Virus record (IMG/VR): IMGVR_UViG_3300017991_000001
Location: 62,001-126,000 of that record
Length of the DNA: 64,000 nucleotides
Reading direction: 5' to 3' (one strand)
Both the position numbers and the translations under genes were made by a program. The notes below the pieces were generated by a model, which saw only the letters and a program-made list of their open reading frames with translations, was not told the DNA's origin and searched no databases. Of this stretch, positions 21,984 through 63,774 are shown piece after piece (position 1 is the first letter of the stretch; each line of letters starts with the position of its first letter).

Positions 21984-22266
21984 GAACCCCAACGAGAACT
22001 GTCTCGAAGGCAGACGCTGTCCGAAGTGCGGCAGCTACGGCCCGTTCACGGTGCTCACCCAGCAGTGGGTGACGCTCACCGACGACGGGACCGACGATCC
22101 CCCCAAGGATCATGGCGACGTTGAATACGACGAGGACGCGCCCGCCAGCTGTCAGGGCTGGCCGGCCGCGAGCGAGGACGAGCCCGTCCAGTTCGCGGAG
22201 GAGTGCGACTTCGAGGGAAAGTGGGGCGATTTTCGCGACAAGGAGGTCAGTGATGCCTCCACGTGA
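21940..22266 (+). CDS. Hypothetical phage protein with CPKC
   Basis: NCLEGRRCPKCGS.GPF...C...CDFEG. Confidence 0.6.
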   Translation: MPKKKKKAAAAQESKNPNENCLEGRRCPKCGSYGPFTVLTQQWVTLTDDGTDDPPKDHGDVEYDEDAPASCQGWPAASEDEPVQFAEECDFEGKWGDFRDKEVSDAST

Positions 22267-23053
22267 GAACCCGTGCTACCTGAAGCTCTACGGGGGCAAC
22301 CCGCACCCCGACAAGACGGATGAGAACCACACGGTCCTGCTGGGCCCGATCACCGACCTGTCGGCCAACAGCCACAGCGTTGAAGTCCGCATGGGTAACA
22401 ACGGCCTGTGCGAGATCTGGTACGACCGCGGCAGGCTGTTCTACGACCGGCACTGGTACCTCGGGTTCGAGGTCATCAGCGAGCTGGCGGCGGCCAGGAG
22501 CACGCTGAGCGTGCAGCCACTGTCGCAGGAGATGGCGGCGCCGCCGAACGACCGCACCAAGCACCCGAATGACACGCACGCCGACAAGCGGCTGATCATG
22601 ATGGTGGGGCTGCCGTGTTCGGGTAAGAGCACGATAGCGAGCAACCTGTCCAAGCACTTCTTCGCCCCGATCGTGTGCCCGGACATCGTGCGCTGGTGCA
22701 TGCACGGGGAGCGAAGCAACAAGCGCATGGAGCCGATGGTATGGTCATGTGTGCATACCATGGTGGAGTCCCTGTTCAGGGTGGGGCACAACTATGTCAT
22801 TCTGGACGCCGTCAACACGATGCGTTGGCACCGTGACCAGTGGAAGGACGATCGCTGGAAGCGCGTCTACATGGTGATGCCGGTCAGCGCCGAGAGGTGC
22901 ATGCGGCGAGCCAAGACGTGTAACGACATCGTGATACAGCCCGTGATCGAGCGTATGGCGGCCACCATGGAGGCGTTGGAGGAAGACGAGAAGGACGATC
23001 CCGAGTTCCAGAGGACGCTGGACTCTTTTCTGGAGGCGGCCGAAAGGCTGTAG
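22253..23053 (+). CDS. P-loop kinase (polynucleotide kinase/AAA_33-like) with N-terminal unknown domain
   Basis: LIMMVGLPCSGKST Walker A; IVCPDIVR; VILDAVN...R. Confidence 0.8.
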   Translation: MPPRENPCYLKLYGGNPHPDKTDENHTVLLGPITDLSANSHSVEVRMGNNGLCEIWYDRGRLFYDRHWYLGFEVISELAAARSTLSVQPLSQEMAAPPNDRTKHPNDTHADKRLIMMVGLPCSGKSTIASNLSKHFFAPIVCPDIVRWCMHGERSNKRMEPMVWSCVHTMVESLFRVGHNYVILDAVNTMRWHRDQWKDDRWKRVYMVMPVSAERCMRRAKTCNDIVIQPVIERMAATMEALEEDEKDDPEFQRTLDSFLEAAERL

Positions 23054-24021: not shown

Positions 24022-25368
24022 CTATTCGGTAAGTTCGCGCAGGGTGGCCAGGCCGCCGTAGCCCAGGCCGCCTGCCAGGCTCGAGCGTAGCGCGGCCAGT
24101 GGTATGGTGGTCTGCCCTTGGAGGTCGGAGACCATGCGGTGGCTGCGTACGGCCGAGATCGGGTCGAAGAGGCCGCCCAGCTGCGGGGACTGGTGGACCA
24201 GCCCGGAGAAGCCTTCGGGGTTGGTCTCAATGATGCGGGCCTTGCCCTTCGGCGTGATGGCCACGTCGAAGCTGAAGGCACGGTTCTTGACGTATTTCGG
24301 CTTGATGCCCTTGGCTTTGCCGAGGGCCTTCTCGACGGCGCGCTCCGCGGTGCGGAAGTAGCCGGGCCGCTGGCCGGCCAGGACGCTGAGCTCCGACAGG
24401 CCGCCGAAACGGTGAGCGGTGGAGCCCGGCAGGACCTTGTTGCCGATGGCGTGCACGCGCAGTTCCAGGTTGGCGGGCTGCCCCGTGGTGGCCATGATCG
24501 CCGCCTCGTCGACGGGGCCGAGCTTGCCGATGGGGAAGCGCTTCTGAATCATCAGGCCCCTGCGGCCTTTGCGCTTCATCATCTCTTTCATCATTTCGCG
24601 GGCGTGCAGGCCCGGGATGCGCTGCCGCAGGATCACCTGCTCGTCTTCGGGCAGCTTCAAGAGCCTTTTGTAGGTGATGTTCTCGGGGCGGCCAAGGAAC
24701 TTGTCCATGATGGTGCGTTGCACCTTCAGGCGGCTTTTCGGGTTGAGGGCCAGCGCCCCGGCCAGGATCTCCCGCAGGTCGTCCTTCTCGGTGATCAGCG
24801 TGCCGGCCGTTTGCGACTCGTCGGTGCCCTTCATGATCCACTTCTTGCCGAGCTTCTTGTCCAGGTGCTTCTGCAGTTCGGTGGCCCGGCGCATGGGGTC
24901 CTTGATCTTGAAGATGCGCCTGGGGAGTTCGTCGCCCAGGATGGTTTTGGGATACAGGTCCGGTACGGCCTTGCCGAAGATCTTGGACTCCATCCGCTTG
25001 GACTCGATGCCCGGGATCTCCTTACCGAAGCCGATGTTGCCTCCGCGCACCCGGCTCTTGGTGAACTGGGTCTCCGAGATCGGCGAGAAGAAGACTTCCT
25101 TGAGTTGCTTGGACTTGGCGGACGTGGGCATGCCGCGCGCCCTGGAGCCGTACTGTAGGTAGTTGAGCAGGTCCGAGTCGTAGGCTTCCCCCTTGGGCAC
25201 TTCGCGGGCCAGGCCCTTTTCCCTGATCTTACGAGCCAGGCGGTTGCCCATTGAACCGGCGCGTATGCGGCGTGCCAGCAGGAAGGTGATGATGGCCGGC
25301 AGACCGATGGCGCCCGCGGTCATCCACGGGCTTTCGATCAGTTCATCGTTCTCTCGAGGTTTAGCCAT
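24022..25368 (-). CDS. ATP-grasp fold ligase-like protein with hydrophobic termini
   Basis: WIMKG, LMIQKRF, ELRVHAIGNKV, FSFDVAI...IIETNP..SG; the only convincing minus-strand gene. Confidence 0.65.
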   Translation of the reverse strand: MAKPRENDELIESPWMTAGAIGLPAIITFLLARRIRAGSMGNRLARKIREKGLAREVPKGEAYDSDLLNYLQYGSRARGMPTSAKSKQLKEVFFSPISETQFTKSRVRGGNIGFGKEIPGIESKRMESKIFGKAVPDLYPKTILGDELPRRIFKIKDPMRRATELQKHLDKKLGKKWIMKGTDESQTAGTLITEKDDLREILAGALALNPKSRLKVQRTIMDKFLGRPENITYKRLLKLPEDEQVILRQRIPGLHAREMMKEMMKRKGRRGLMIQKRFPIGKLGPVDEAAIMATTGQPANLELRVHAIGNKVLPGSTAHRFGGLSELSVLAGQRPGYFRTAERAVEKALGKAKGIKPKYVKNRAFSFDVAITPKGKARIIETNPEGFSGLVHQSPQLGGLFDPISAVRSHRMVSDLQGQTTIPLAALRSSLAGGLGYGGLATLRELTE

Positions 25369-25912
25369 GGAAGATGTTAAAGTCCTCAACAAGCGCGTGC
25401 GCGCGCAGTTACGCAGGCTCGGAGTGAAGCTGCCGCGCGGTGAACCCGACGTTTCACGGGTCGCCCGCAAGTGGCACCCCCTCGACTATATTTGTTCCTG
25501 GTACGAGGGTCAAGACGGAGAGCACGCCATTAACGTCAAGGCGTTGGGCGGGATGTGGCTGATGCGCCACGAATACGGGCACTACCTGGTGGAGAAATAC
25601 GACCTGGCGAAGCAGAAGTCCTACAAGAACACCTTCAAGAACGGGCCGCTCTACGCGGAAGGTTTGGGCTACGATGTCGGCGTGGTCTTCCTGCGAGCGA
25701 CGGACGTTGTGCTGCGCAAGGGCGCCAAGATCAGCCCGCCGAAGGGCCACCCGACATTCTATGCGTTGCTTGGCGGCGAAGAGTGTTTCTGCGAGTGCGT
25801 GGCGCTGCTGCTATCCAACCGCTGCGATTACCGCAAGGCTGCCGACGGTGACATGTGGCTGGAGAACCGCCTGATCATCACGAGGCTGCTTCTTGAACAG
25901 CACTGTCGCTAA
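25367..25912 (+). CDS. HExxH zinc metallopeptidase-like protein
   Basis: RHEYGHY plus distal EECFCEC; GAGGT RBS. Confidence 0.55.
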   Translation: MEDVKVLNKRVRAQLRRLGVKLPRGEPDVSRVARKWHPLDYICSWYEGQDGEHAINVKALGGMWLMRHEYGHYLVEKYDLAKQKSYKNTFKNGPLYAEGLGYDVGVVFLRATDVVLRKGAKISPPKGHPTFYALLGGEECFCECVALLLSNRCDYRKAADGDMWLENRLIITRLLLEQHCR

Positions 25913-29907: not shown

Positions 29908-30957
29908 ATGCTGGTCAAGATGTATCCGCAGGAGAAGGGCCTGACGTTTGGCCTGAACAAGTACCCGGGCGCCGAGCTGCGCGGCTGCGTCAACGATTCA
30001 GAGGACATGGCCAACGAGCAGGTCAGGGCCTACGACTGGGACCCCGGCAATATCCGGCTCTTGACCGACTTCCGCTGCACGCGTAAGGAGATGTTCAAGC
30101 GGCTGGAGTGGCTGGTGGACGTGAAGAAGGGTGATCGTGTCTTCTTCCACCAGAGCGGGCATGGCGTGCAGTTTCCCTCCCGCTCCTACAGCGGCGAGCC
30201 CGATGGCCTGCTCGAGGCGTTCTGCCCGATCGACTTCGCGTGGTGTCTGGACGGGATGGTGACCGACAAGGACTACGTGGAGTTCTTCAGCCGCATCCCC
30301 AGAGGGGTTGAGTTCACCTGGGTGAACGACTCCTGCCACTCGGGCGACCTGACCCGGGCGCAGCCCGGCAACCCGCACGGCCCAACGATCGTCCCGCGGT
30401 CCTATCCCGTCCCCGAGGACATCGCCTGGCGGCACAAGGGCCTGAAGACCCGCAACATCAAGAGCATGGAGCGGGCCATGGTCTGCGGGAAGATGGACGT
30501 GGGTTTCGTGAGTGCCTCACGCTCCGATCAAACAGCAGCCGACACCTTTGTCAACGGACGCCCCTGCGGGGCGCTCACGCATTACTTCCTCCAGACATTG
30601 CGAGGAAATCGCCAGCTCCCGCTCGAAACGGTGGTGAGCATGACGAGGGACACGTTGCGGGCGCAGGGTTATACCCAGGAGCCGCAGGCCGAAGGCCGGC
30701 GCGTGGACAAGCCGTTCATGATAAACAGGGCGGTTCCCGGTGCGCCCGGTGCTGTAGGTTGCATCAGCCAAACAGGGCCAACCGGTCCGGTCGAGGAGCA
30801 GGTGGGCGTTACCCACGCTTCCACCCCCGAGTCTCACTTAGATCCGGTCGGACCGGGCGGTGTGACCGGCGTTATGGGTCCGGCTGGGACCTACTTGCTG
30901 CCTTTCGACAAGGAAGGCGCGCAGAACGTCTGTCCGCACTGCGGGAAGACAAAATGA
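29908..30957 (+). CDS. Metacaspase / caspase-like peptidase C14
   Basis: GLNKY..AELRGCVND, FFHQSGHG, CPIDF, DSCHSG (His-Cys dyad intact). Confidence 0.9.
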   Translation: MLVKMYPQEKGLTFGLNKYPGAELRGCVNDSEDMANEQVRAYDWDPGNIRLLTDFRCTRKEMFKRLEWLVDVKKGDRVFFHQSGHGVQFPSRSYSGEPDGLLEAFCPIDFAWCLDGMVTDKDYVEFFSRIPRGVEFTWVNDSCHSGDLTRAQPGNPHGPTIVPRSYPVPEDIAWRHKGLKTRNIKSMERAMVCGKMDVGFVSASRSDQTAADTFVNGRPCGALTHYFLQTLRGNRQLPLETVVSMTRDTLRAQGYTQEPQAEGRRVDKPFMINRAVPGAPGAVGCISQTGPTGPVEEQVGVTHASTPESHLDPVGPGGVTGVMGPAGTYLLPFDKEGAQNVCPHCGKTK

Positions 30958-31076: not shown

Positions 31077-32003
31077 ATGGCTTGGATCATCAGTGCTGTC
31101 CTCTTCCTGTGTTGGGGCGCCTACATCGGCCGCCACGACGGGAGCGCCGACTCGGGCGGCCTCAAGCATCTCCTCTATCGCATCTGGCGTCGCCTGGCCT
31201 TCTGGGCCGGCGACGTCAGGTTCTGGTGGGAGTGGTACTTCGGGTTCATCCCGCTACCGCGGTTCTCTTGGGCGCACCATGAGTACGCCATCACCTACGA
31301 GACCCTGCTTGATGCCTGTAAGCGCTTGCAGCCAGGCGACATCATGCTGGCCACCAAGAAGGGCTACATCTTCTCCAACTCGGCAATCCCGGGGTGTTTC
31401 AAGCACGCCGGCATCATCGTGCAAGGCCCCGACTCCGCGAGGGTGCAACCGGTAGACCCCCCTGACAGGCCGTTTTCGACCCCCGACCTCGCGAGGGTGC
31501 AACTCGTTGAGGCGATCTCCGAGGGCGTGGTCAGGCGCCACCCCCTGTGGGCCCGGGGCGACCTGATGATCTTCCTCAGGCCCAAGCACGCGCAGGACAA
31601 GGACCGGGAGAAGGCCGTTGAGATCGCCCACGCCATCGTCGGCTGCAAGTACGACGCCTCCTTCAAGTTCAACATGGAGGAGGAGCTGAAGCTGCTGGCC
31701 GAGCAGGAGGAGAGCCCGCTGGTCGAGAACGTGGAGGAGCTGCACCGTTCCATGCGGAACCTCCGCTCCGAGTACGATATGTCCTTCAGCTGCACGGAGG
31801 TTGTGGCGACGGCCTGGTGGCATATGCGCAAGCGGTTGGGGATCGCCCGCAAGAAGGTCAGGGGCAGGTTGTGCATCACGGCCGACCAATTTTTAAACAG
31901 GGACTTCAAGGTCGTGTGGACAAATGTTACAGTGGGGCAGGCTGAGAAGGCCGGCCTTGGTGAAGAGGGGGTTCGGGAGCTGAAAGCGTACTGGAACGAA
32001 TAA
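31077..32003 (+). CDS. Permuted papain-like amidase (YiiX/YaeF, NlpC/P60 superfamily)
   Basis: LQPGDIML, FKHAGII, LVEA...GV, KYD, FSCTEVV; hydrophobic N-terminus. Confidence 0.8.
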   Translation: MAWIISAVLFLCWGAYIGRHDGSADSGGLKHLLYRIWRRLAFWAGDVRFWWEWYFGFIPLPRFSWAHHEYAITYETLLDACKRLQPGDIMLATKKGYIFSNSAIPGCFKHAGIIVQGPDSARVQPVDPPDRPFSTPDLARVQLVEAISEGVVRRHPLWARGDLMIFLRPKHAQDKDREKAVEIAHAIVGCKYDASFKFNMEEELKLLAEQEESPLVENVEELHRSMRNLRSEYDMSFSCTEVVATAWWHMRKRLGIARKKVRGRLCITADQFLNRDFKVVWTNVTVGQAEKAGLGEEGVRELKAYWNE

Positions 32004-42425: not shown

Positions 42426-42790
42426 GGGCCCGATTTAGATTCGACGGCGGGTACGGAGGATGTGGCAGCACGCCGCGGTTGATCGGTTGGCCGCGTTATC
42501 AAGCCGATCACACAATCAAATGCCAAGACGAAAGTCGTGGCCGGCGACTTCGGCGCAAGCCGGGTCGCCCTCGCTGCTTAACCGACAGCGGGTGAAGGTG
42601 CCCGTACTCCTGGTCCCCAGGTAAGAACGGGAAGGTCCAAAGGGGGATGGCAGCGGGGAAGACTGCTGACGGCAACCAAAGGCTGCTGACGGGGCCGCCG
42701 GGTCCTGGGAAAGACCGAACCCGGATAAGCGTGTAGAGACCCCTTCCGAAGTTCCGGCGGACTTGGGTGCAAATCCCAACGGGTCCACCA
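42426..42790 (+). ncRNA. ssrA: tmRNA (one-piece); tag ORF 42522-42581 = AKTKVVAGDFGASRVALAA*
   Basis: Acceptor GGGCCCG/CGGGTCC with G3-U70, ACCA 3' end, GATTCGAC D-loop motif, GAC plus T-arm TTGGG-TGCAAAT-CCCAA, tag ending ALAA-TAA, 365 nt. Confidence 0.95.
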
Positions 42791-42809: not shown

Positions 42810-43262
42810 ATGCATGCAGGTGAAGCGTTGTGGACGCTGTACGCTGCGCTGGCGGCCGTTGGCCAGCGCACCCTGAAGGACCCCGGGGCGAACGCCCTGT
42901 TGACGAAGGCGGAGGAGTGCTGCGCCGTACTCGGGCAGCACATCAAGGTCGAGCCGCCCCCGATCGACCAGAAGATGCTCAGGGCGGCGGACCTGGTTGA
43001 GCGGCTGGTGCAGGCGGACGAGGCCGAAAGTAAGGCCAGTACGATTACGGATGGCGCGGCCCGCGAGGCCTTCGACCTGGCGGTCGGCATCCTGGAGGAC
43101 CTGGACGAGCTGCCCGACCGGGCGGAGGAGTTCACGGAGTCCGTGCGGGAGAAGGTTACCAGCATGCGCGACAGCATTGAGAAGTACGACAACGTGACGG
43201 CGCCGATGATGAAGGCGCTGCAGAACATGCGTGGGGGCGTCGACAGGTGGCTGAAGCGATAG
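42810..43262 (+). CDS. Hypothetical helical acidic protein
   Basis: AGGAG RBS. Confidence 0.6.
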   Translation: MHAGEALWTLYAALAAVGQRTLKDPGANALLTKAEECCAVLGQHIKVEPPPIDQKMLRAADLVERLVQADEAESKASTITDGAAREAFDLAVGILEDLDELPDRAEEFTESVREKVTSMRDSIEKYDNVTAPMMKALQNMRGGVDRWLKR

Positions 43263-43270
43263 GAGAGAAC

Positions 43271-43957
43271 ATGTCGGGTGAAGACAAGGTCCCTTCGGTC
43301 AAGGAACGCATACAGCAGAAGGCTTCGGGCGCGCACAAGACGCCCGAGGAGTTGAAGGCGGAGACGACGCAACGCATCGCCAAGGAGGTGTTCAACGTCG
43401 AATCGCCGATTACGGAGGAACGGCGGATCGCGGCGAACCTGGAACGCGACAAGCTCAAGGCCAAGCAGGCCGGCAAGCTGCAGCTGCTCAACATGAGCGG
43501 CGGCCACCTGGCCAACCTGATCGTCGGGATCTGGACGTTGATGTCGGTCACGGCGGCGGTGGTGGCCATGGTGACGTACTACTTCCTGTTGATTCACATC
43601 GAGGAGGCGCGCAAGGCTGCGCCTGTGCCGGCGAAGCAGGAGCCGGTCGTGGTCAATGTGCCTCCCATGCCGGAAACCAAACCCCCACAACTGTTCGTCT
43701 TCCTGCCTGGTAAAGAGGGCACGAAGACCATCAGGGTGGAGGGCATCAACCCGGCCACCTGGCCGGACGAGGTGCGCATCCGGCTTTCCGACATGGAGGC
43801 GCTGAAGTCGATTTTGAAGGAGCTGAAGCCCCCGGACCCTCCAAAGGCCGCCCCGCCAAAGAAGAAGGCGCGGGCGGCAAAAAGCACACAAGTCCAGAAG
43901 GGTAAGGACGGTAGCGAGTGGCTACCGCCTCCGAGGGACGTGGTTCCGCGGCAGTAG
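43271..43957 (+). CDS. Membrane protein with Pro-rich C-terminus
   Basis: AGGAG RBS; long hydrophobic segment LIVGIWTLMSVTAAVVAMVTYYFLLI. Confidence 0.6.
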   Translation: MSGEDKVPSVKERIQQKASGAHKTPEELKAETTQRIAKEVFNVESPITEERRIAANLERDKLKAKQAGKLQLLNMSGGHLANLIVGIWTLMSVTAAVVAMVTYYFLLIHIEEARKAAPVPAKQEPVVVNVPPMPETKPPQLFVFLPGKEGTKTIRVEGINPATWPDEVRIRLSDMEALKSILKELKPPDPPKAAPPKKKARAAKSTQVQKGKDGSEWLPPPRDVVPRQ

Positions 43958-43995
43958 GCTTCACATAACCCACAACATGCAGTACACTTCGGGAC

Positions 43996-44244
43996 ATGGA
44001 CATCGAGATACAGTACTGCGAGTTGTGAGGGGGTCGAGAACACGCCGACCGTGTTGTCGGTGAGATCCGCCGGTACCTGTCGCTGCCCACGAGCATCCTT
44101 GACGTGGGCAAGGGCAAGTTCGAGGTGCTGGTCAATGGCAAGACCATCTTTTCAAAGCAGAAGGCAGGACGGTTTCCGCGTCCCGGCGAGATCGCCAAGA
44201 TCTGTCGGGACACGTTCCGAAATCCGATGCAGGCATCGAAATGA
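43996..44244 (+). CDS. Rdx/SelW-SelT-SelH family selenoprotein (CxxU), 82 aa, UGA at 44026-44028 read as Sec
   Basis: MDIEIQYCELUGGREH...GKFEVLVNGKTIFSKQKAGRFPRPGEI; family motifs on both sides of the in-frame TGA; true stop overlaps the next ATG (ATGA). Confidence 0.85.
44041..44064 (+). promoter_or_regulatory. Bacterial SECIS-like hairpin
   Basis: GCCGAC-CGTGTT-GTCGGT; loop starts 21 nt after UGA with G-U at loop positions 2-3. Confidence 0.6.
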
Positions 44245-44582
44245 GCATGTCGAAGCCCAACTGGAGCGACCTGAAGCGCCGCCGGCGCATGGGTCGCGCG
44301 CAGCGCTGGAAGTCCGCCGTGAAGCACGTACCGCGGCTGACCGCCTTCTGCGCCGAGCACGGCGTGGAAATGAGATCCGTGGATGGGGGGTATCAGTTCC
44401 GGTTCATGGAGTACGTGATCATCTGGTTCCCGGCGACCAACAAGGTGCTGGTCCAATACCAGTTGCCGGGGCATGAGACCGTTCGATTTGAAGAGAACGG
44501 ACAACACAACAAGCCACGTGTACTAGTGGCACTGGAGGAGATGGTTGACCTCACGAGGCCTAAATGCGTATCGCACGGTTAG
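44241..44582 (+). CDS. Hypothetical protein
   Basis: ATGA overlap with the selenoprotein stop. Confidence 0.6.
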   Translation: MSMSKPNWSDLKRRRRMGRAQRWKSAVKHVPRLTAFCAEHGVEMRSVDGGYQFRFMEYVIIWFPATNKVLVQYQLPGHETVRFEENGQHNKPRVLVALEEMVDLTRPKCVSHG

Positions 44583-44928
44583 TCTGTGCGTGACCGACAG
44601 CGTCTCGTCAGAGTGTCGGTTGTGCCAGTGCCGATCCCGACGAGACGAGCAGCTTGTGGCCCTGGAGCTGTACCCCGGGCCGAGGCTTGAGATCTACTGC
44701 TGTGAGTGTTACGAACACCTCTGGGTGGAAGCGTCTCCACACATGCCGGAGCTGCCTCCGCTGATTCAGTTGGAGACGGAAACTTCGCAGCTACAGGTAC
44801 CGGAGTACCTGGTCAAGGACAACAGCCTGTTCCAGTTGTTCTTTCCGAGCGACCCCATCAACCTGGGCGTCCTCAGGCAGCAGCGCCGCCGCGAACGCGG
44901 CCAGCTCGAAAAGGAGGGTAAGAGGTGA
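44545..44928 (+). CDS. Hypothetical Cys-rich protein
   Basis: CRLC...CCEC; start uncertain. Confidence 0.45.
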   Translation: MTSRGLNAYRTVSLCVTDSVSSECRLCQCRSRRDEQLVALELYPGPRLEIYCCECYEHLWVEASPHMPELPPLIQLETETSQLQVPEYLVKDNSLFQLFFPSDPINLGVLRQQRRRERGQLEKEGKR

Positions 44929-45416
44929 TAAGGAACCCGCAGTTTCATCTCGGGGCGTTGTTCATGGTTTTGCTGATGGCCCCGCCCGTACTGACAGGGT
45001 GTTGGGGCAACGGCACCCCGGTCGACACGCCCCAGAAGAGGGCGGAGTTGGCGAAGGACGCCGGAGAGCTGGCGGCGCTGGGCTACCTGGCGATCGACAA
45101 GCCCTCCAACGAGGACGCCGCGAAGATCAAGGAGATCATCGACAAGGTCCGCGGCAGCCTTACGGAGTGGAAGGAGGGCGGCTTCATCACGGCGCTGCCC
45201 GAGCTGGAGGAACTGGCCGACAAGCTCTTCGAGGGGGAGGACAAGAAGGCTCTTCGCATCGGCGCCAAAAAGCTGACGAAGATGCTGCTCGAGGAGCTGG
45301 ACAACCTCTTTGAAAAGAACCCTTCGTGGAAGGACAAGGGCGACGAGGTGGCCACGCTGATCGGGAAGTTTATGGATGGGGCCTCGGACTCGTTCAAGAC
45401 GTACATTGAGTCCTAG
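44925..45416 (+). CDS. Putative lipoprotein
   Basis: Basic N-terminus, hydrophobic core, lipobox LTG-C. Confidence 0.65.
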   Translation: MIRNPQFHLGALFMVLLMAPPVLTGCWGNGTPVDTPQKRAELAKDAGELAALGYLAIDKPSNEDAAKIKEIIDKVRGSLTEWKEGGFITALPELEELADKLFEGEDKKALRIGAKKLTKMLLEELDNLFEKNPSWKDKGDEVATLIGKFMDGASDSFKTYIES

Positions 45417-51766: not shown

Positions 51767-51992
51767 GCTGAAGATTATTTCGGACGGCACACCCGAAGGT
51801 ACGCGCCTGGTCGACAGTGTGACGTCGGAGGATTTGAAGTTGCCCATTAAGAGCATTGTGTGGCGGTTTGACGTGGAGAGTTTCCCAACCGCGGAAGTGA
51901 CGCTGTTGTGTCCTCTGGCTACGTTGGTGGCGGATACCGTCATAGGAGGCCCGGATGGACCGGTCGAAAACAAAGGTGGCAGTGATCGGTGA
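51759..51992 (+). CDS. Small hypothetical protein
   Basis: LKIISDGT..GTRLVD. Confidence 0.55.
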   Translation: MRRLKIISDGTPEGTRLVDSVTSEDLKLPIKSIVWRFDVESFPTAEVTLLCPLATLVADTVIGGPDGPVENKGGSDR

Positions 51993-52938
51993 CGTGATGC
52001 TGGACGTGCACATCCACTGTGACGTGACGGGCATCTCCCCCGAAGACGACATCGCCCCCAAGCTGCGCATCCGCGAGGAGACCTTGCGGCCCGGCGGAGC
52101 CGGCAACGTGGCCCTCAACCTGAAGAGCCTGGGCCTGATCGACGAGGTCTACCTCTTCGGGTTGGTCGGTGCCGACGAGGAGGGCGACATGCTCAAGGGC
52201 GCCGTTGACGGCGCCTGCATCAATTTCATGGAGCTCGTCGACACCCGGCCCACCACCGTCAAGACCCGCTACCTGACCCAGCGCGGGCGGCACCTGTGCC
52301 GGGTGGACCGCGAGTCCGTTTTTCCCGTGACGGGCCACGAGCGCAACGCGTTGGAGAAGGCCATCATGAGCCACGGCCCGTACGACATGTTCGTGATCTC
52401 AGACTACGGCAAGGGCGTGGTCACGGACGGACTGATGGAGGGGTTGCGGGAGCGCAGCGGGGAGTCCCTGCCCATCGTGGTCGACCCCAAGGGGGACGAC
52501 TTCACCAAGTACGGCGAGGTGTACGCGGTCACCCCCAATATCAAGGAGTTCCTGGGCATCATGCGGAACCGCGCCGCGGACGTCTGGAACCTGAAGTGCG
52601 CGGCCCAGAACATCGTCATCACCCGCGGCGAGGAGGGCTGCCAGCTTCTGCGCACGGACGACAGGCAGCTCTTTCAGGGCGCATACACGGGTGACCCCGT
52701 CAAGAACACCTTCCCCTCCCGGGCCCGCGAGGTGGGTGACCCCACCGGCTGCGGGGACTCCTTCGTGGCGGGGCTGGTCAGCTCGCTGGTGGTGCATACG
52801 CAGCATCCCAAGCACGAGAGGCTGCAGCAGGCCTGCCGCTTCGCCAACGCGGTGGGGGCCTGCGCCTACGACCACCAGGGGGCCCGGTCGGTCACGCTGG
52901 ATGAGGTGCAGAAAGAGTTCGAGACGTTCAACTACTAG
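51955..52938 (+). CDS. Heptose-7-phosphate kinase (HldE/RfaE domain I, PfkB family)
   Basis: VIGDVMLD, RISP-like GISPE, PGGAGNVALN, TTVKTR, RVDRE, SDYGKG, VDPKG, TPN.KE, TRGEEG, DPTGCGDSFVA. Confidence 0.9.
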   Translation: MDRSKTKVAVIGDVMLDVHIHCDVTGISPEDDIAPKLRIREETLRPGGAGNVALNLKSLGLIDEVYLFGLVGADEEGDMLKGAVDGACINFMELVDTRPTTVKTRYLTQRGRHLCRVDRESVFPVTGHERNALEKAIMSHGPYDMFVISDYGKGVVTDGLMEGLRERSGESLPIVVDPKGDDFTKYGEVYAVTPNIKEFLGIMRNRAADVWNLKCAAQNIVITRGEEGCQLLRTDDRQLFQGAYTGDPVKNTFPSRAREVGDPTGCGDSFVAGLVSSLVVHTQHPKHERLQQACRFANAVGACAYDHQGARSVTLDEVQKEFETFNY

Positions 52939-57075: not shown

Positions 57076-58938
57076 GTGCCGATCGACAACACAGCCGTCT
57101 TCTCGTCCTTTCCCAATGAGCCGTCCGGCTCCAACCAGGCCAACCGCTCCAACCGCTTCAGCGGGGCGTTCCCGGACCCCTACCTGGACTATGCCTCCAC
57201 GCAGATGCCGCGCAGCATGTACGACGTGCTGCGCTGGTGCGAGTACGTGTGGATCACCTACGGCACGTACCGCATGGCCTGCCAGCGCGTGGTCCGGTAC
57301 TTCCTGACCCGCATCGAGCTGACCGACGCCTCGGACGACGAGAAGGAGAAGTTCGAGGACTTCCTCGGCCCCGAGCACCTCAACCTGATGCACGAGTTGG
57401 CCAGCTCCGGCGATAACCGGATGGCTTACGGCAACGACTTCATCTCCATGCACGTGCCGTTCCGCCGGCACCTGAAGTGCCCCAACTGCAAGGCGGAGAG
57501 CCCGTTGAAGGGCATGGCCTACCGTTGGATCGGGTGGCGCTTCGAGTCCAAGTGCAAGAAGTGTAAGTACGAGGGCCGCTTCGAGCGCGTGGACCGCCGG
57601 TCCATCGAGCAGGACAAGCTCAGGATCATCCACTGGCCGGCCCACGAGATCCGCATCCTGCACCACCCCATCACCAACGAGTCGATGTACTTCTGGGAGA
57701 TCCCGCCCACGGTCAGGAGCTTGATCGAGCGGGGCAACGAGTTCTACCTGGAGAAGACGCCTTGGGAGATCATCGAGGCTTGCCGGCAGCGCAAGCTTTT
57801 CCGCTTCAACAAGGACGTGATGTTCCACTTGCGCGACGAGCCCATCTCGGGTGTGCGGGACTATGGCTGGGGCATTCCCCTCATCATGGGGAACTTCAAG
57901 CAGGCCTGGCTCATACAGGTCCTGAAGCGCTACAACGAGGCCATTGCGCTGGACTACATCATCCCGTTCCGAGCGGTGACGCCCAAGCCGGGCACCTCGC
58001 GTGAAGCCGACCCGTTGCTGCACATGAACCTGGGCAACTTCCAGAACAAGGTCCTGGGCATGTTCAGGCAGCACCGCCGCGACCCGACCATGATCCACGC
58101 GCTGCCGTTCCCGGTGGAGATGCAGATGTTGGGCGCGGAGGGCAAGCAGCTCGCGCCTTCGGAGCTGCTGGACGCGGCCACCGACGAGTTTCTCAATGCA
58201 CAGGGGATACCCGCCGAGCTTTACAAGGGCACGCTGCAACTGCAGGCCATGCCCACGGCGCTGCGCTTGTTCGAGCGCACATGGGTGTCACTCATAGATG
58301 GCTTTAACGCGATGATCAATTGGATATTCAGGCGCGTATCCGATTTAATGAACTGGGAGAACTTGAAGGGAAGACTGCAACCGGTCACCATGGCCGACGA
58401 TCTGGAACGGAAGGCCGTCATGCTGCAGCTGGCCGCCGGTCAACAGATCTCCCGCCAAACGGCCCTGGCGCCCTTCGGCATCGATCTGCGCGAGGAAATC
58501 AAGCGCATGTTCGAGGAAGAGGAATACACCCAGGAGCAGATGGCGCGTTTCCAGGAGGAAATGGCGCAGAAGCAGGAACTCCAGCAGACCATGCAAATGG
58601 GTGCTGCCGGCATGCTGCCGCCAGGTGGCGCGGCCATGCCTCCAGGCGCCGCACCAATGCCAGGGGCGCCGCCTCCGGCCATGGGCGCTCCCGCCGCTCC
58701 CGCCGCCGCCGGCCAGCAGGGCGTCTCCATCGACGACCTGTCCATGCAGGCCGAGCAGGAGGCCCACCGTCTCATCTCCATGCCGTATGAGATGAGGAAG
58801 TCCGAGCTGTTGCAGATCAAGCGATCCAACGAGACGCTGCATGCCCTGATCATCTCCAAAATGGACACACTGAGGAATCAGGCCAAGACGCAGGGGGGTC
58901 AAATGTTGCTTCAACAGTCCGCGGGTGCCGCGGCGTGA
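57076..58938 (+). CDS. Putative portal / head morphogenesis protein with CxxC insertion
   Basis: 620 aa; YGN.F and WGIP elements, acidic Gln/Pro/Ala-rich tail, position at start of structural-like block; no search run. Confidence 0.4.
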   Translation: MPIDNTAVFSSFPNEPSGSNQANRSNRFSGAFPDPYLDYASTQMPRSMYDVLRWCEYVWITYGTYRMACQRVVRYFLTRIELTDASDDEKEKFEDFLGPEHLNLMHELASSGDNRMAYGNDFISMHVPFRRHLKCPNCKAESPLKGMAYRWIGWRFESKCKKCKYEGRFERVDRRSIEQDKLRIIHWPAHEIRILHHPITNESMYFWEIPPTVRSLIERGNEFYLEKTPWEIIEACRQRKLFRFNKDVMFHLRDEPISGVRDYGWGIPLIMGNFKQAWLIQVLKRYNEAIALDYIIPFRAVTPKPGTSREADPLLHMNLGNFQNKVLGMFRQHRRDPTMIHALPFPVEMQMLGAEGKQLAPSELLDAATDEFLNAQGIPAELYKGTLQLQAMPTALRLFERTWVSLIDGFNAMINWIFRRVSDLMNWENLKGRLQPVTMADDLERKAVMLQLAAGQQISRQTALAPFGIDLREEIKRMFEEEEYTQEQMARFQEEMAQKQELQQTMQMGAAGMLPPGGAAMPPGAAPMPGAPPPAMGAPAAPAAAGQQGVSIDDLSMQAEQEAHRLISMPYEMRKSELLQIKRSNETLHALIISKMDTLRNQAKTQGGQMLLQQSAGAAA

Positions 58939-59687: not shown

Positions 59688-60298
59688 TGGAAGCGACCTA
59701 CGACCACAACCTGGCCGTCTTCGGCCGCTGGATCGGATTCTGGCGCGACCGTTGGCACAGCAAGGGCGAAGCCTACAGCGGCGGCGTCGAGCAGACCCGC
59801 ACCATCGAAGGCATCATCCGAGGCCTTTTCTCCCCCAAGCACTACTACCCGGACGCCATGGACTTCGGCGCTGGCCACGGCCGCTTCTGCGAGCTGATGA
59901 GCCTGTACTGCGGCCACATCTGGGCGGCGGACATCGTGGACGACATGCTGGACTGCTACGGTTCCAAGGCGCCCACGGTCACGCCCATGAAGCTGGAGTG
60001 GCCGGTCAAGCTGCCCCTGCGGGACGACAAGCTGGACCTGCTGTGGGCCTTCTTCACCTTCCAGCACATCGTCGACCCCACCATCTTCCAGCTCACCACC
60101 CAGGAGCTGCGCCGGGTCCTCAAGTCCGGTTCTCGCATCCTGATCATTGACAACGCCGTCGATACGGCCAATCATGTACGTTCCCGCGGCCCCGAGGCAC
60201 TGGGGAAAGCACTGGGCATGAAGCCCGGCTTCACGCAAGTGCGCGTGACCATAGGGAATCCGCATGACCATTGGCTGATCGACGGGGTCAAGGCTTAA
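59684..60298 (+). CDS. Class I SAM methyltransferase (Methyltransf_11-like)
   Basis: MDFGAGHGR, AADIV, LPL.D..DL, FQHI, LRRVLKSG. Confidence 0.85.
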   Translation: MMEATYDHNLAVFGRWIGFWRDRWHSKGEAYSGGVEQTRTIEGIIRGLFSPKHYYPDAMDFGAGHGRFCELMSLYCGHIWAADIVDDMLDCYGSKAPTVTPMKLEWPVKLPLRDDKLDLLWAFFTFQHIVDPTIFQLTTQELRRVLKSGSRILIIDNAVDTANHVRSRGPEALGKALGMKPGFTQVRVTIGNPHDHWLIDGVKA

Positions 60299-61815
60299 TG
60301 CCCAAGGAAGACTTCGCCCCAGGACTACCCGACCCCTCCCGCTTCGGTGAGATACACAAGCTCATCACGGGGAAGGAGCTCCCCTTTGTCATACAGCGGC
60401 ACCTGGCAGAGCGAGCCGGCCCACACTACGACGTCCGATTCGGTACACGTCCAGACGCCCAGGCTCCGCTGGTCTCGTTCGCCACGAAGAAGGACTGGCC
60501 GGGGCCCGGCGGCAAGACGATGCTCTTCCAGCAGCCGCTCCACAGCGGACAGTACGCCGACTTCGAGGGCGAGATCACGCACGGCTACGGCAAGGGCACG
60601 GTCAAGACCCATGAGAAGGGGAAGCTGATCGTCACTCAGGCTGACAAGGACAAGATCAAGTTCGTCCTGGCCCACAAGAAGTTCCCCGAGACCTACACCC
60701 TGATCCGCAAGAGCGGTCCTCCCAGGCCCAAGACCGAGCGCCAGCGTGCCACGCAGGGCGGCTCGTGGCTGTTGATCAACACCACGCCCATGGACGCCGC
60801 GAAGATGCTGGGCGGCGAGCCTGAAGCTGTCGGCCTCAACAAGATGCGTTACACAAAGATCCCGTCCGAGCAGGTGGACAAGGTCTTCAGCAAGGACTAC
60901 CTGGTGCAGGAGAAGGTTGACGGGGCCAGCGCTTTATATCACCTGCTGGCCGACCGGATCGAGGTGTTGTCCTACCGCACGGCCCAGGACGACCGCCCCA
61001 TCATCCACACCTACAGGACCATGGGGCCGGGCGGCGAGAAGGCCGGGGTCAAACTCCCCAAGCGCCTGATCGGGACCATCCTCCGCGGCGAGATCTACGG
61101 CGAGCGGGAGGGCCAGGCCATACCGCCGCAGGAGCTGGGCGGCATCCTCAACGCTTCGACCGTGCGGTCCCTGGAGAAGCAACGCGAGCAGAAGGTCAGG
61201 ATGAAGCACATGCTGTTCGACGTGGTCCGGTTGGGCAAGGACTACGTGCCGCCCGTCTCCGTGGGCGCCGAGGACCGCATGCGGATGCTCAGCGACGTGT
61301 CCAAGTACCTGCCACCGTCTTTCAGCATGCCGGAGACGGCCACCGACCCTGCTGCACAGCGTGACTTATACAAACGTATTACGGGCGGCGAGCACCCGCG
61401 CACGCGTGAGGGGATCATCGCCTGGCCCAAGGAGCCCGGGAAGAAGCCGATCAAGGTCAAGGCCACCCCAGAGGCCGACGTGTGGGTGCAGAAGGTCTTC
61501 CCCGGAGAGAAGAGATTGAAGGGTGTCGGAGCCGGTGGTTTCGAGTATAGTCTGTCACCGGAAGGCCCCGTAACGGGCCGTGTCGGTACAGGGTTTACAG
61601 AAGCCACGCGCAAGGAGATGCTGGAAGATCCAGAGGGGTGGAAGGGCCGCCTGGCCCGCATTCGCTCCCAGGGCCGCTTCCCAAGCGGCGCACACCGTGC
61701 CCCGGCTTTCATTTCGCTGCACGAGGACTATCCTTTGCGCAAGGCGTCCTCGGCGGACCTGGACGCGATACAGGAACTTCTGGACGCCGCGACACGCGCT
61801 TTCATGACGAGGTAG
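60298..61815 (+). CDS. LigD-type 3'-phosphoesterase domain fused to ATP-dependent DNA ligase
   Basis: FVIQRHLA.RAGPHYDVR...FEGEI..GYGKG.V; QEKVDG, LRGEI, LFDVV, EGII, KVK, GRVGTGF, P.F. Confidence 0.8.
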   Translation: MPKEDFAPGLPDPSRFGEIHKLITGKELPFVIQRHLAERAGPHYDVRFGTRPDAQAPLVSFATKKDWPGPGGKTMLFQQPLHSGQYADFEGEITHGYGKGTVKTHEKGKLIVTQADKDKIKFVLAHKKFPETYTLIRKSGPPRPKTERQRATQGGSWLLINTTPMDAAKMLGGEPEAVGLNKMRYTKIPSEQVDKVFSKDYLVQEKVDGASALYHLLADRIEVLSYRTAQDDRPIIHTYRTMGPGGEKAGVKLPKRLIGTILRGEIYGEREGQAIPPQELGGILNASTVRSLEKQREQKVRMKHMLFDVVRLGKDYVPPVSVGAEDRMRMLSDVSKYLPPSFSMPETATDPAAQRDLYKRITGGEHPRTREGIIAWPKEPGKKPIKVKATPEADVWVQKVFPGEKRLKGVGAGGFEYSLSPEGPVTGRVGTGFTEATRKEMLEDPEGWKGRLARIRSQGRFPSGAHRAPAFISLHEDYPLRKASSADLDAIQELLDAATRAFMTR

Positions 61816-61819
61816 AGCC

Positions 61820-62533
61820 ATGGCCGAAGCAGATCGCGTACGCACCCTGGTCAAGAACCTGACCGACCGCCGGCGGGTCAGCTGGATGCCGCCCAACGGC
61901 CGCGAGATGGGCGACCAGGAGCAGGTCAGTGTGGACGGCGTGCTCGAGAACATCGTCGTGATGGGCATGGACGCTGCGGTCTTCGACCAGTACGTCTACG
62001 ACCTGGCCAACGACCGTGTCGAGATCACCAAGCTGGGCTACGCAGGCGGCGGCGAGGAGGAGACCGAGTCCTTCACCACGGTGGTGGGCGACGGCTCCGA
62101 GACGGTCTTCGACATCGACGCGGGCTTCAACACGGCCAACGCCAGGGTCTTCGTTTACGACACCATCAGCGGCTCCCAGATCACGGCCTACCAGTTCCAG
62201 CTGCAGACGCCCACGACCACCAGCGTGCGGCTGACCTTCAACCCCGCGCCGGCCGCGGGGCAGATCCGGGTCTTCATCTTCAGCCCGAGCACGGCGGAGG
62301 GCGAGACCTACGATTCCGGCGACATCGGCAACGGCGCCGACACTGAATTCGTGCTCGATTTGGGCTTCCCGGCGGCCCTGGCGGACATCTACGTTTTCGA
62401 TGCGCTTGGCGGAGGACCGATCTTCGGATACTCCTTGCAGCGCGCCACGCCCACCCTGAACAGCATCACGGTGGGGTTTTCCCCTGCTCCGGCTTCGGGG
62501 CAGATTCGGCTGTTCGCGTTTGAGCGGTCTTGA
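61820..62533 (+). CDS. Putative virion protein with two about 65-aa beta repeats
   Basis: G[DN]G..T.F....GF...V.D...TPT..S....F.PAPA.GQIR twice. Confidence 0.6.
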   Translation: MAEADRVRTLVKNLTDRRRVSWMPPNGREMGDQEQVSVDGVLENIVVMGMDAAVFDQYVYDLANDRVEITKLGYAGGGEEETESFTTVVGDGSETVFDIDAGFNTANARVFVYDTISGSQITAYQFQLQTPTTTSVRLTFNPAPAAGQIRVFIFSPSTAEGETYDSGDIGNGADTEFVLDLGFPAALADIYVFDALGGGPIFGYSLQRATPTLNSITVGFSPAPASGQIRLFAFERS

Positions 62534-62833: not shown

Positions 62834-62844
62834 GGAGGTAGGTG

Positions 62845-63774
62845 ATGGCTGACACTCCGATGTTCAACCCGATTGACATGCAAAACAATCGGATCAAGAA
62901 CCTGCCCGCTCCCGTCGACGATGACGATCCGTTGCGCAAGGTCGACCAGTCTTCCGGCCCAACCGGGGTTACGGGGGCCACCGGCGCCTCGGGCGCGGCC
63001 GGTACGGACGGCGTGACAGGCGTGACGGGTGCCACCGGCGCGGCCGGTGTTACGGGCGTGACCGGGGTCTCGGGCGCGGCCGGTACGGACGGTGTCACGG
63101 GTGTGACCGGAGCCACAGGCTCCGCAGGGGCTCAGGGTGTGACCGGCGTGACTGGTGCTACAGGTTCCGCCGGGTCAGCGGGAGCGCAAGGCGTGACCGG
63201 CGTGACCGGTGCCACGGGCTCGGCGGGTGCTGCCGGCGCCACGGGTGTGACCGGTGCGCAAGGCGTGACCGGCGTGACCGGTGCGACCGGTCTTGGCGTG
63301 ACCGGCGTGACCGGGGCCACGGGCTCAGCGGGTTCCGTTGGCGCGACAGGCGCCACCGGGGCCACCGGTGCCACAGGACCGGCCATCAACGCCACGGAGT
63401 CCGCAATCGGTTCGGTTGAGCTGGCTACTGAGGCCGAAGCTAAGGCTGGTGCTACAGGCGCTGGTAGTGTGGGTCCGCTGGCCGTACGCCCCATTCATCT
63501 GATGGTATACCGCGACCCGAACTATGGTACGCTTATCGCCCGCGCAAACCTGACACCGCCGGCCTCAACTCCGTATGCCCGAGGCTCCTACGCTGTCGAA
63601 CTTCAGTCTGAGATCAACGCCGACGATCAGGTGGCCTATGGGGCCTATGATGTAGTGGTTGGCAGTCGGAATAAGAGTACCCTCGGCAGTTACGCCAACG
63701 TCGTTCATGGGCGAGCCAATTCCTGCGAGGGCGGTGACAACTTCGTTTTCGGCACGTCAAACAGCATCGGCTAG
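62845..63774 (+). CDS. Collagen-like (Gly-X-Thr) fibre protein
   Basis: [15 protein letters not shown]-terminus, 47 G-X-Y triplets, GxxN-rich C-terminus. Confidence 0.8.
62956..63384 (+). repeat. Collagen triplet repeat region
   Basis: 47 triplets with one G-L interruption; mostly GVT/GAT. Confidence 0.9.

Follow-up and report, generated by a model that had tools for sequence, protein, structure and literature searches.

The window analysed here is a 64,000-nt stretch, positions 62,001 to 126,000, of the 211,084-bp IMG/VR contig IMGVR_UViG_3300017991_000001. Its genes run almost entirely on the plus strand at a uniform GC of 0.60-0.64, and few of their products match Pfam or PHROGs. At 43996-44244, between two genes of unknown function, an ATG opens a frame of ten sense codons that is interrupted by a TGA, continues for 71 sense codons and ends at a TGA overlapping the start codon of the next gene (ATGA). 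No other in-frame start codon exists between the upstream stop and this ATG, and the frame fills a 283-nt stretch in which gene callers annotate only a short GTG ORF. The features of the locus and its context are as follows.

42426-42790 (+), tmRNA gene with tag AKTKVVAGDFGASRVALAA (ARAGORN; Rfam RF00023, 93.6 bits), the only tRNA-like gene in the window, and not tRNA-Sec
43247-43957 (+), upstream 236-aa gene of unknown function in conserved synteny, without a Pfam hit
43960-43988 (+), promoter-like site TTCACA-17 nt-TACACT, the -10 hexamer ending 7 nt before the ATG
43996-44244 (+), Rdx/SelW-like probable selenoprotein gene, 82 sense positions, one of them the UGA
44017-44028 (+), proposed redox motif Cys-Glu-Leu-Sec (TGC GAG TTG TGA), the putative Sec codon being 44026-44028
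44043-44062 (+), SECIS-like hairpin: 5' arm 44043-44049, loop CGUGUU 44050-44055, 3' arm 44056-44062
44104-44244 (+), the truncated 46-aa GTG ORF (P0001) reported by automatic gene calling in place of the full gene
44241-44582 (+), downstream 113-aa gene of unknown function, a conserved partner without a Pfam hit
57076-58938 (+), 620-aa portal protein homologue

The window belongs to a large phage genome. The portal homologue matches the annotated portal of Salmonella phage Arash (tblastn, 27% identity, E 9e-64) and the 187-kb Vibrio phages D69/D148/D181 (about 30% identity, E 3e-75 to 9e-75), with an additional weak hit to phrog_64. Other recognisable phage genes, at 29908-30957, 51955-52938, 62842-63774, 60271-61815, 22112-23053 and 31077-32003, encode a caspase-domain protein (PF00656, E 2e-19), a PfkB-family sugar kinase (E 3e-30), a collagen-repeat protein, a LigD 3'-phosphoesterase domain fused to an ATP-dependent ligase, an AAA_33/polynucleotide-kinase-like protein and a weak C92 amidase-like protein. 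A 482-aa ORF at 24022-25470 (-) with GC3 0.87 and no Pfam match, located where the AT skew turns negative, is probably one of the few minus-strand genes.

The TGA is not an assembly error, as the sequence is identical over 321 bp in loci from five separate JGI metagenomes, and the same locus was recovered from two IMG/VR contigs of two further datasets with an identical translation, including the in-frame stop. Elsewhere TGA is an ordinary stop codon and the commonest one in the window, ending 34 of 54 crude plus-strand ORFs, many of them long high-GC3 genes followed at once by the next start. Genome-wide reassignment of TGA was therefore rejected, and any recoding must be site-specific. A scan of the window for further Cys-adjacent in-frame TGAs with coding signal on both sides gave only weak candidates, most of them on the non-coding strand, although the filter also missed the gene described here and is thus insensitive.

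The 71-aa piece after the TGA alone passes the cut-off of the Pfam Rdx (SelW/SelT/SelH) family PF10262, with 29.4 bits against 22.6 (E 9e-7, profile positions 41-74). Its best database relative, the 80-aa protein P0002 from the syntenic locus L001, is 66% identical and carries C-L-M-C where the window has C-E-L-TGA. P0002 and the further syntenic Cys homologues P0003 and P0004 match the whole Rdx profile at 47-57 bits, P0002 itself at 47 bits. By sequence, P0002 matches MIEN1 (2LJK), including its CxxC, and the SelW-related proteins 2FA8 and 2P0G. The fold was predicted only for P0002 as a proxy; its AlphaFold model (pLDDT 91.2, pTM 0.82) has the beta-alpha-beta-beta-beta-alpha order, with the CxxC between strand 7-11 and helix 17-32, and its best PDB matches are SelW-related proteins.

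Searches of IMG/VR, JGI metagenomes and assembly collections gave eleven distinct lineages with the signature C-x-x-(U/C)-G-G ... DVGxGxFxV ... FSK..GRFP (loci are designated by L numbers). Eight of them have TGA at this codon (the window, L092, L011, L094, L172, L173, L175 and L178) and three have TGC or TGT (TGC in L001, TGT in L179 and L181). In all eleven the ATG lies exactly ten codons before the U/C codon, and the frame is open and conserved on both sides, with I-x-Y/F-C upstream and G-G downstream and without other stops or frameshifts. In the parts outside the called ORF pN/pS is below 1, at 0.2-0.75 in the closer comparisons, albeit on small counts with saturated synonymous sites. All loci that are long enough share the window's neighbours, i.e., the 113-aa downstream gene and the 150-aa and 236-aa upstream genes; homologues of the 113-aa gene lie directly downstream of the Rdx gene in L001, L092, L011, L094, L172, L176, L177 and L178, and homologues of the 236-aa gene lie upstream in L092 and L174. 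The tmRNA gene is conserved in L092 (1906-2288) with one tag substitution (D to N). The promoter-like site is the only sigma-70-like match in 1 kb, against 0.2 expected, and by eye similar -10-like hexamers (TACAAT, TAAACT, TACACT, GATAAT) sit 6-7 nt before the ATG in L092, L094, L172, L173 and L178. This suggests a leaderless or very short-leader transcript; the window has only a weak Shine-Dalgarno-like GGGA. Interestingly, the conserved 163-aa gene two genes downstream (44925-45416 (+); L011 3939-4430) starts with a hydrophobic segment followed by L-T-G-C (M-T-G-C in L011), by eye a lipoprotein signal, and the upstream 236-aa protein has a hydrophobic segment and a Pro/Lys-rich tail; the gene may sit in a module of envelope-associated proteins.

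In a tree built from the post-codon pieces, the phage sequences, together with six Cys forms of unchecked context, form one clade with support 100/98 on a long branch (length 1.11), within which Cys forms arise at least three times. The nearest cellular group, with weak support (94/70), consists of Gaiellaceae-like Actinomycetota SelW-like genes (loci L039, L059, L068, L080, L082) with U-G-G or U-D-G motifs, which is a faint hint about the source of the gene or the host.

The hairpin pointed out in the earlier note extends to 7 bp, starts after 14 nt and opens its loop 21 nt after the UGA. Taken alone it is thermodynamically unremarkable: its energy is -10.7 kcal/mol with z about -0.9, 16% of 33-nt segments of the window fold as well, a 60-nt fold has z = -0.01, and a window-specific alternative fold competes within 0.8-1.7 kcal/mol, so that the pair probability ranges from 0.09 to 0.49 with context. 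No Rfam SECIS model matched, either at gathering score in the window or at E up to 10 in 43900-44300, which weighs little since bacterial SECIS elements are probably too variable for one general model to be expected to hit. The support is comparative. All eight TGA forms have a 5-7 bp hairpin at this site, centred about 27 nt from the U of UGA, with differing stem sequences and the loops CGUGU(U), CGGGU(U), GGU or GUG. Between the window and L092 a C-G pair becomes U-A at the cost of two amino-acid changes (Ala to Val, Gly to Asp). On the five sequences sharing one register, 93% of cells pair and two of six pairs change on both sides; the covariation score is 0.433 against 0.108 in shuffles (5 of 500 reach it), and slid controls are 0.10 or less. 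Moreover, 116 distinct cellular SelW-like TGA genes carry their hairpin at the same place, with the loop starting 21-22 nt after the UGA in 94, G among the first two loop bases in 110 and GU in the loop in 98, and the G-U falls at the same coordinates as in the window. Across the family, TGA forms fold better in this segment than Cys forms (z -1.30 against -0.08, Mann-Whitney p = 5e-8). Within the phage clade, however, the hairpin is not a clean discriminator of the two forms, as it is lost in L181, weakened by an A-C mismatch in L001 and retained in L179. L179 is sister to the TGA form L011, and its hairpin looks like a fossil element, or part of the pairing may come from the conserved Ala...Val-Ala/Gly codons.

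We therefore consider it likely, with good though not complete confidence, that 43996-44244 is an intact gene for an 82-residue predicted thioredoxin-fold oxidoreductase of the Rdx/SelW-like family with the active-site motif Cys8-x-x-Sec11. By inference from the established bacterial pathway, SelB-GTP-Sec-tRNA(Sec) of the host would bind the hairpin and deliver selenocysteine to UGA 44026, translation would continue to the stop at 44242, and, by inference from the family, the product would cycle between selenol/thiol and selenenylsulfide as a phage-supplied redox protein during infection. The earlier note had proposed a phage-encoded Rdx/SelW selenoprotein with a SECIS-like hairpin and TGA otherwise an ordinary stop, and each checkable element held, with the qualification that the hairpin of this one sequence is not statistically unusual. 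Its further claims, that the phage borrows SelA/SelB/SelC/SelD from the host and that this restricts the host, remain inferences. No tRNA-Sec was found in the 64-kb window or in neighbouring loci, and none of the 20 window ORFs scanned, which include 16 ORFs of 300 aa or more, matched SelA, SelB or SelD. The three Cys-form lineages show that Sec is dispensable for the protein.

Among the alternatives, read-through by a near-cognate tRNA (Trp/Cys/Arg) or a phage suppressor tRNA, with the hairpin as a generic stimulator or incidental, survives best but is unlikely. It would agree with the fact that no Sec machinery was seen in the window, with the ordinary stability of the hairpin and with the tRNAs that large phages often carry. 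However, the position is the redox-active residue, Cys or Sec throughout the family (146 TGA and 26 TGY among 172 loci retrieved with the family probe, phage-clade loci and duplicates included), the hairpin has the distance and G-U loop positions of cellular SelW-like SECIS, and a Trp or Arg here would destroy the CxxC/U centre, which does not fit conservation of the gene in eight lineages. It is improbable that the gene is a Sec gene by descent that is silent in its present host, because the host lacks the Sec trait or because SelB and the SECIS are mismatched. The repeated Sec-to-Cys replacements suggest that Sec decoding is sometimes unavailable, but the hairpin and the TGA are intact and identical in seven assemblies, and the compensatory double change in L092 implies ongoing selection. 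A true stop in a decaying pseudogene, or in two unrelated tiny ORFs (a 10-aa peptide plus the 46-aa GTG ORF), is comparably doubtful; gene callers do report only the 46-aa ORF, but eight lineages diverged down to about 50% amino-acid identity keep the TGA, the ATG and an open frame without indels, pN/pS is below 1 in the supposedly non-coding parts, and the Cys forms are uninterrupted full-length Rdx proteins. A sequencing or assembly error can be all but dismissed given the identical assemblies and the TGA in seven other diverged relatives.

It is somewhat more likely than not that a whole clade of large (160-211 kb) phages makes a true selenoprotein, which would be the first selenoprotein family of prokaryotic viruses. 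The Sec-to-Cys switches would then track whether the host of each phage can decode Sec, making the codon a readable marker of host range. A bolder possibility is that the unsearched two-thirds of the genome carries part of the Sec machinery, such as a tRNA-Sec. ARAGORN calls tRNA-SeC (anticodon TCA) on four unrelated IMG/VR viral contigs (L191 7505-7599, L195 2275-2371, L216 7260-7354, L235 2555-2651), which could be prophage ends next to a host selC or genuinely phage-borne. A conserved phage selenoprotein would show that phages can depend on a specialised host recoding system, which adds a new constraint on host range, and it would represent a new kind of phage-carried redox gene. Sec and Cys forms in otherwise syntenic genomes offer a natural comparison of what Sec buys over Cys. 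Every pipeline call of this gene seen here is truncated (46-59 aa), so such genes are systematically hidden in viral databases. Database Rdx proteins with C-x-x-W-N-Y where relatives have C-x-x-U-N-Y (P0015, P0016, P0024, P0044) are probably Sec UGA codons translated as Trp under genetic code 4, an artefact that hides selenoproteins in a different way.

Selenoproteins are known in bacteria, archaea, eukaryotes and two poxviruses, whereas our full-text literature searches found no described phage selenoprotein, and tblastn of P0002 against 50,697 deposited phage genomes found no Rdx homologue. A marine survey noted few or no viral sequences in selenoprotein families (PMC9402790). The protein family and the mechanism are thus known, and what is new is the carrier, a clade of large phages forming its own subfamily.

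Among the closest known systems are the bacterial SelW-like selenoproteins (PMC1088965, PMC1794560, PMC2398784), which share the small thioredoxin fold with CxxU just after strand 1, the C-terminal GxFEV...FSK...GRFP signature, and the SECIS loop starting 21-22 nt after the UGA with G-U in the loop. In that family the Sec form predominates and Cys forms are rare, as reported (PMC1794560) and as seen in our loci. The phage gene differs in its carrier, in its separate long-branch clade, in the motif U-G-G instead of the usual U-N-Y or U-G-Y, and in its loops, which replace GUC, GUU or GGUCU. The glutathione peroxidases of molluscum contagiosum virus (MC066L) and fowlpox virus (GPX4) are likewise virus-encoded and must use the Sec machinery of the host (PMC6769590, PMC1802603); in fowlpox the SECIS lies inside the coding region, and the Cys-form canarypox relative has a fossil SECIS, paralleled here by L179. 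These are, however, eukaryotic viruses with a eukaryotic-type SECIS and another protein family, and according to a 2019 review they were the only two proven viral selenoproteins (PMC6769590). Of the solved SelW-related/Rdx structures, the P0002 model superposes on the bacterial entries 2FA8 (A. tumefaciens), 2P0G (V. cholerae) and 2OBK at TM 0.84-0.87 and rmsd 1.2-1.3 A, and it also matches mouse SelW (2NPB); the bacterial entries whose alignment was seen carry CxxC at the site, identity to the model is only 20-30%, and none is viral. Compared with SECIS/SelB recoding of the E. coli fdhF type, which likewise appears to use a hairpin immediately 3' of the UGA with G and U exposed in the apical loop, the spacing is within the 16-37 nt range of the bSECISearch model given in the earlier note, but the stem is short (7 bp) and neither a lower stem nor a bulged U is evident. 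Finally, in phages with genome-wide stop-codon reassignment, e.g., code 15 crAss-like phages (PMC9523058), a stop codon is also read as sense, while here the recoding is site-specific and TGA remains the main stop codon of the genome.
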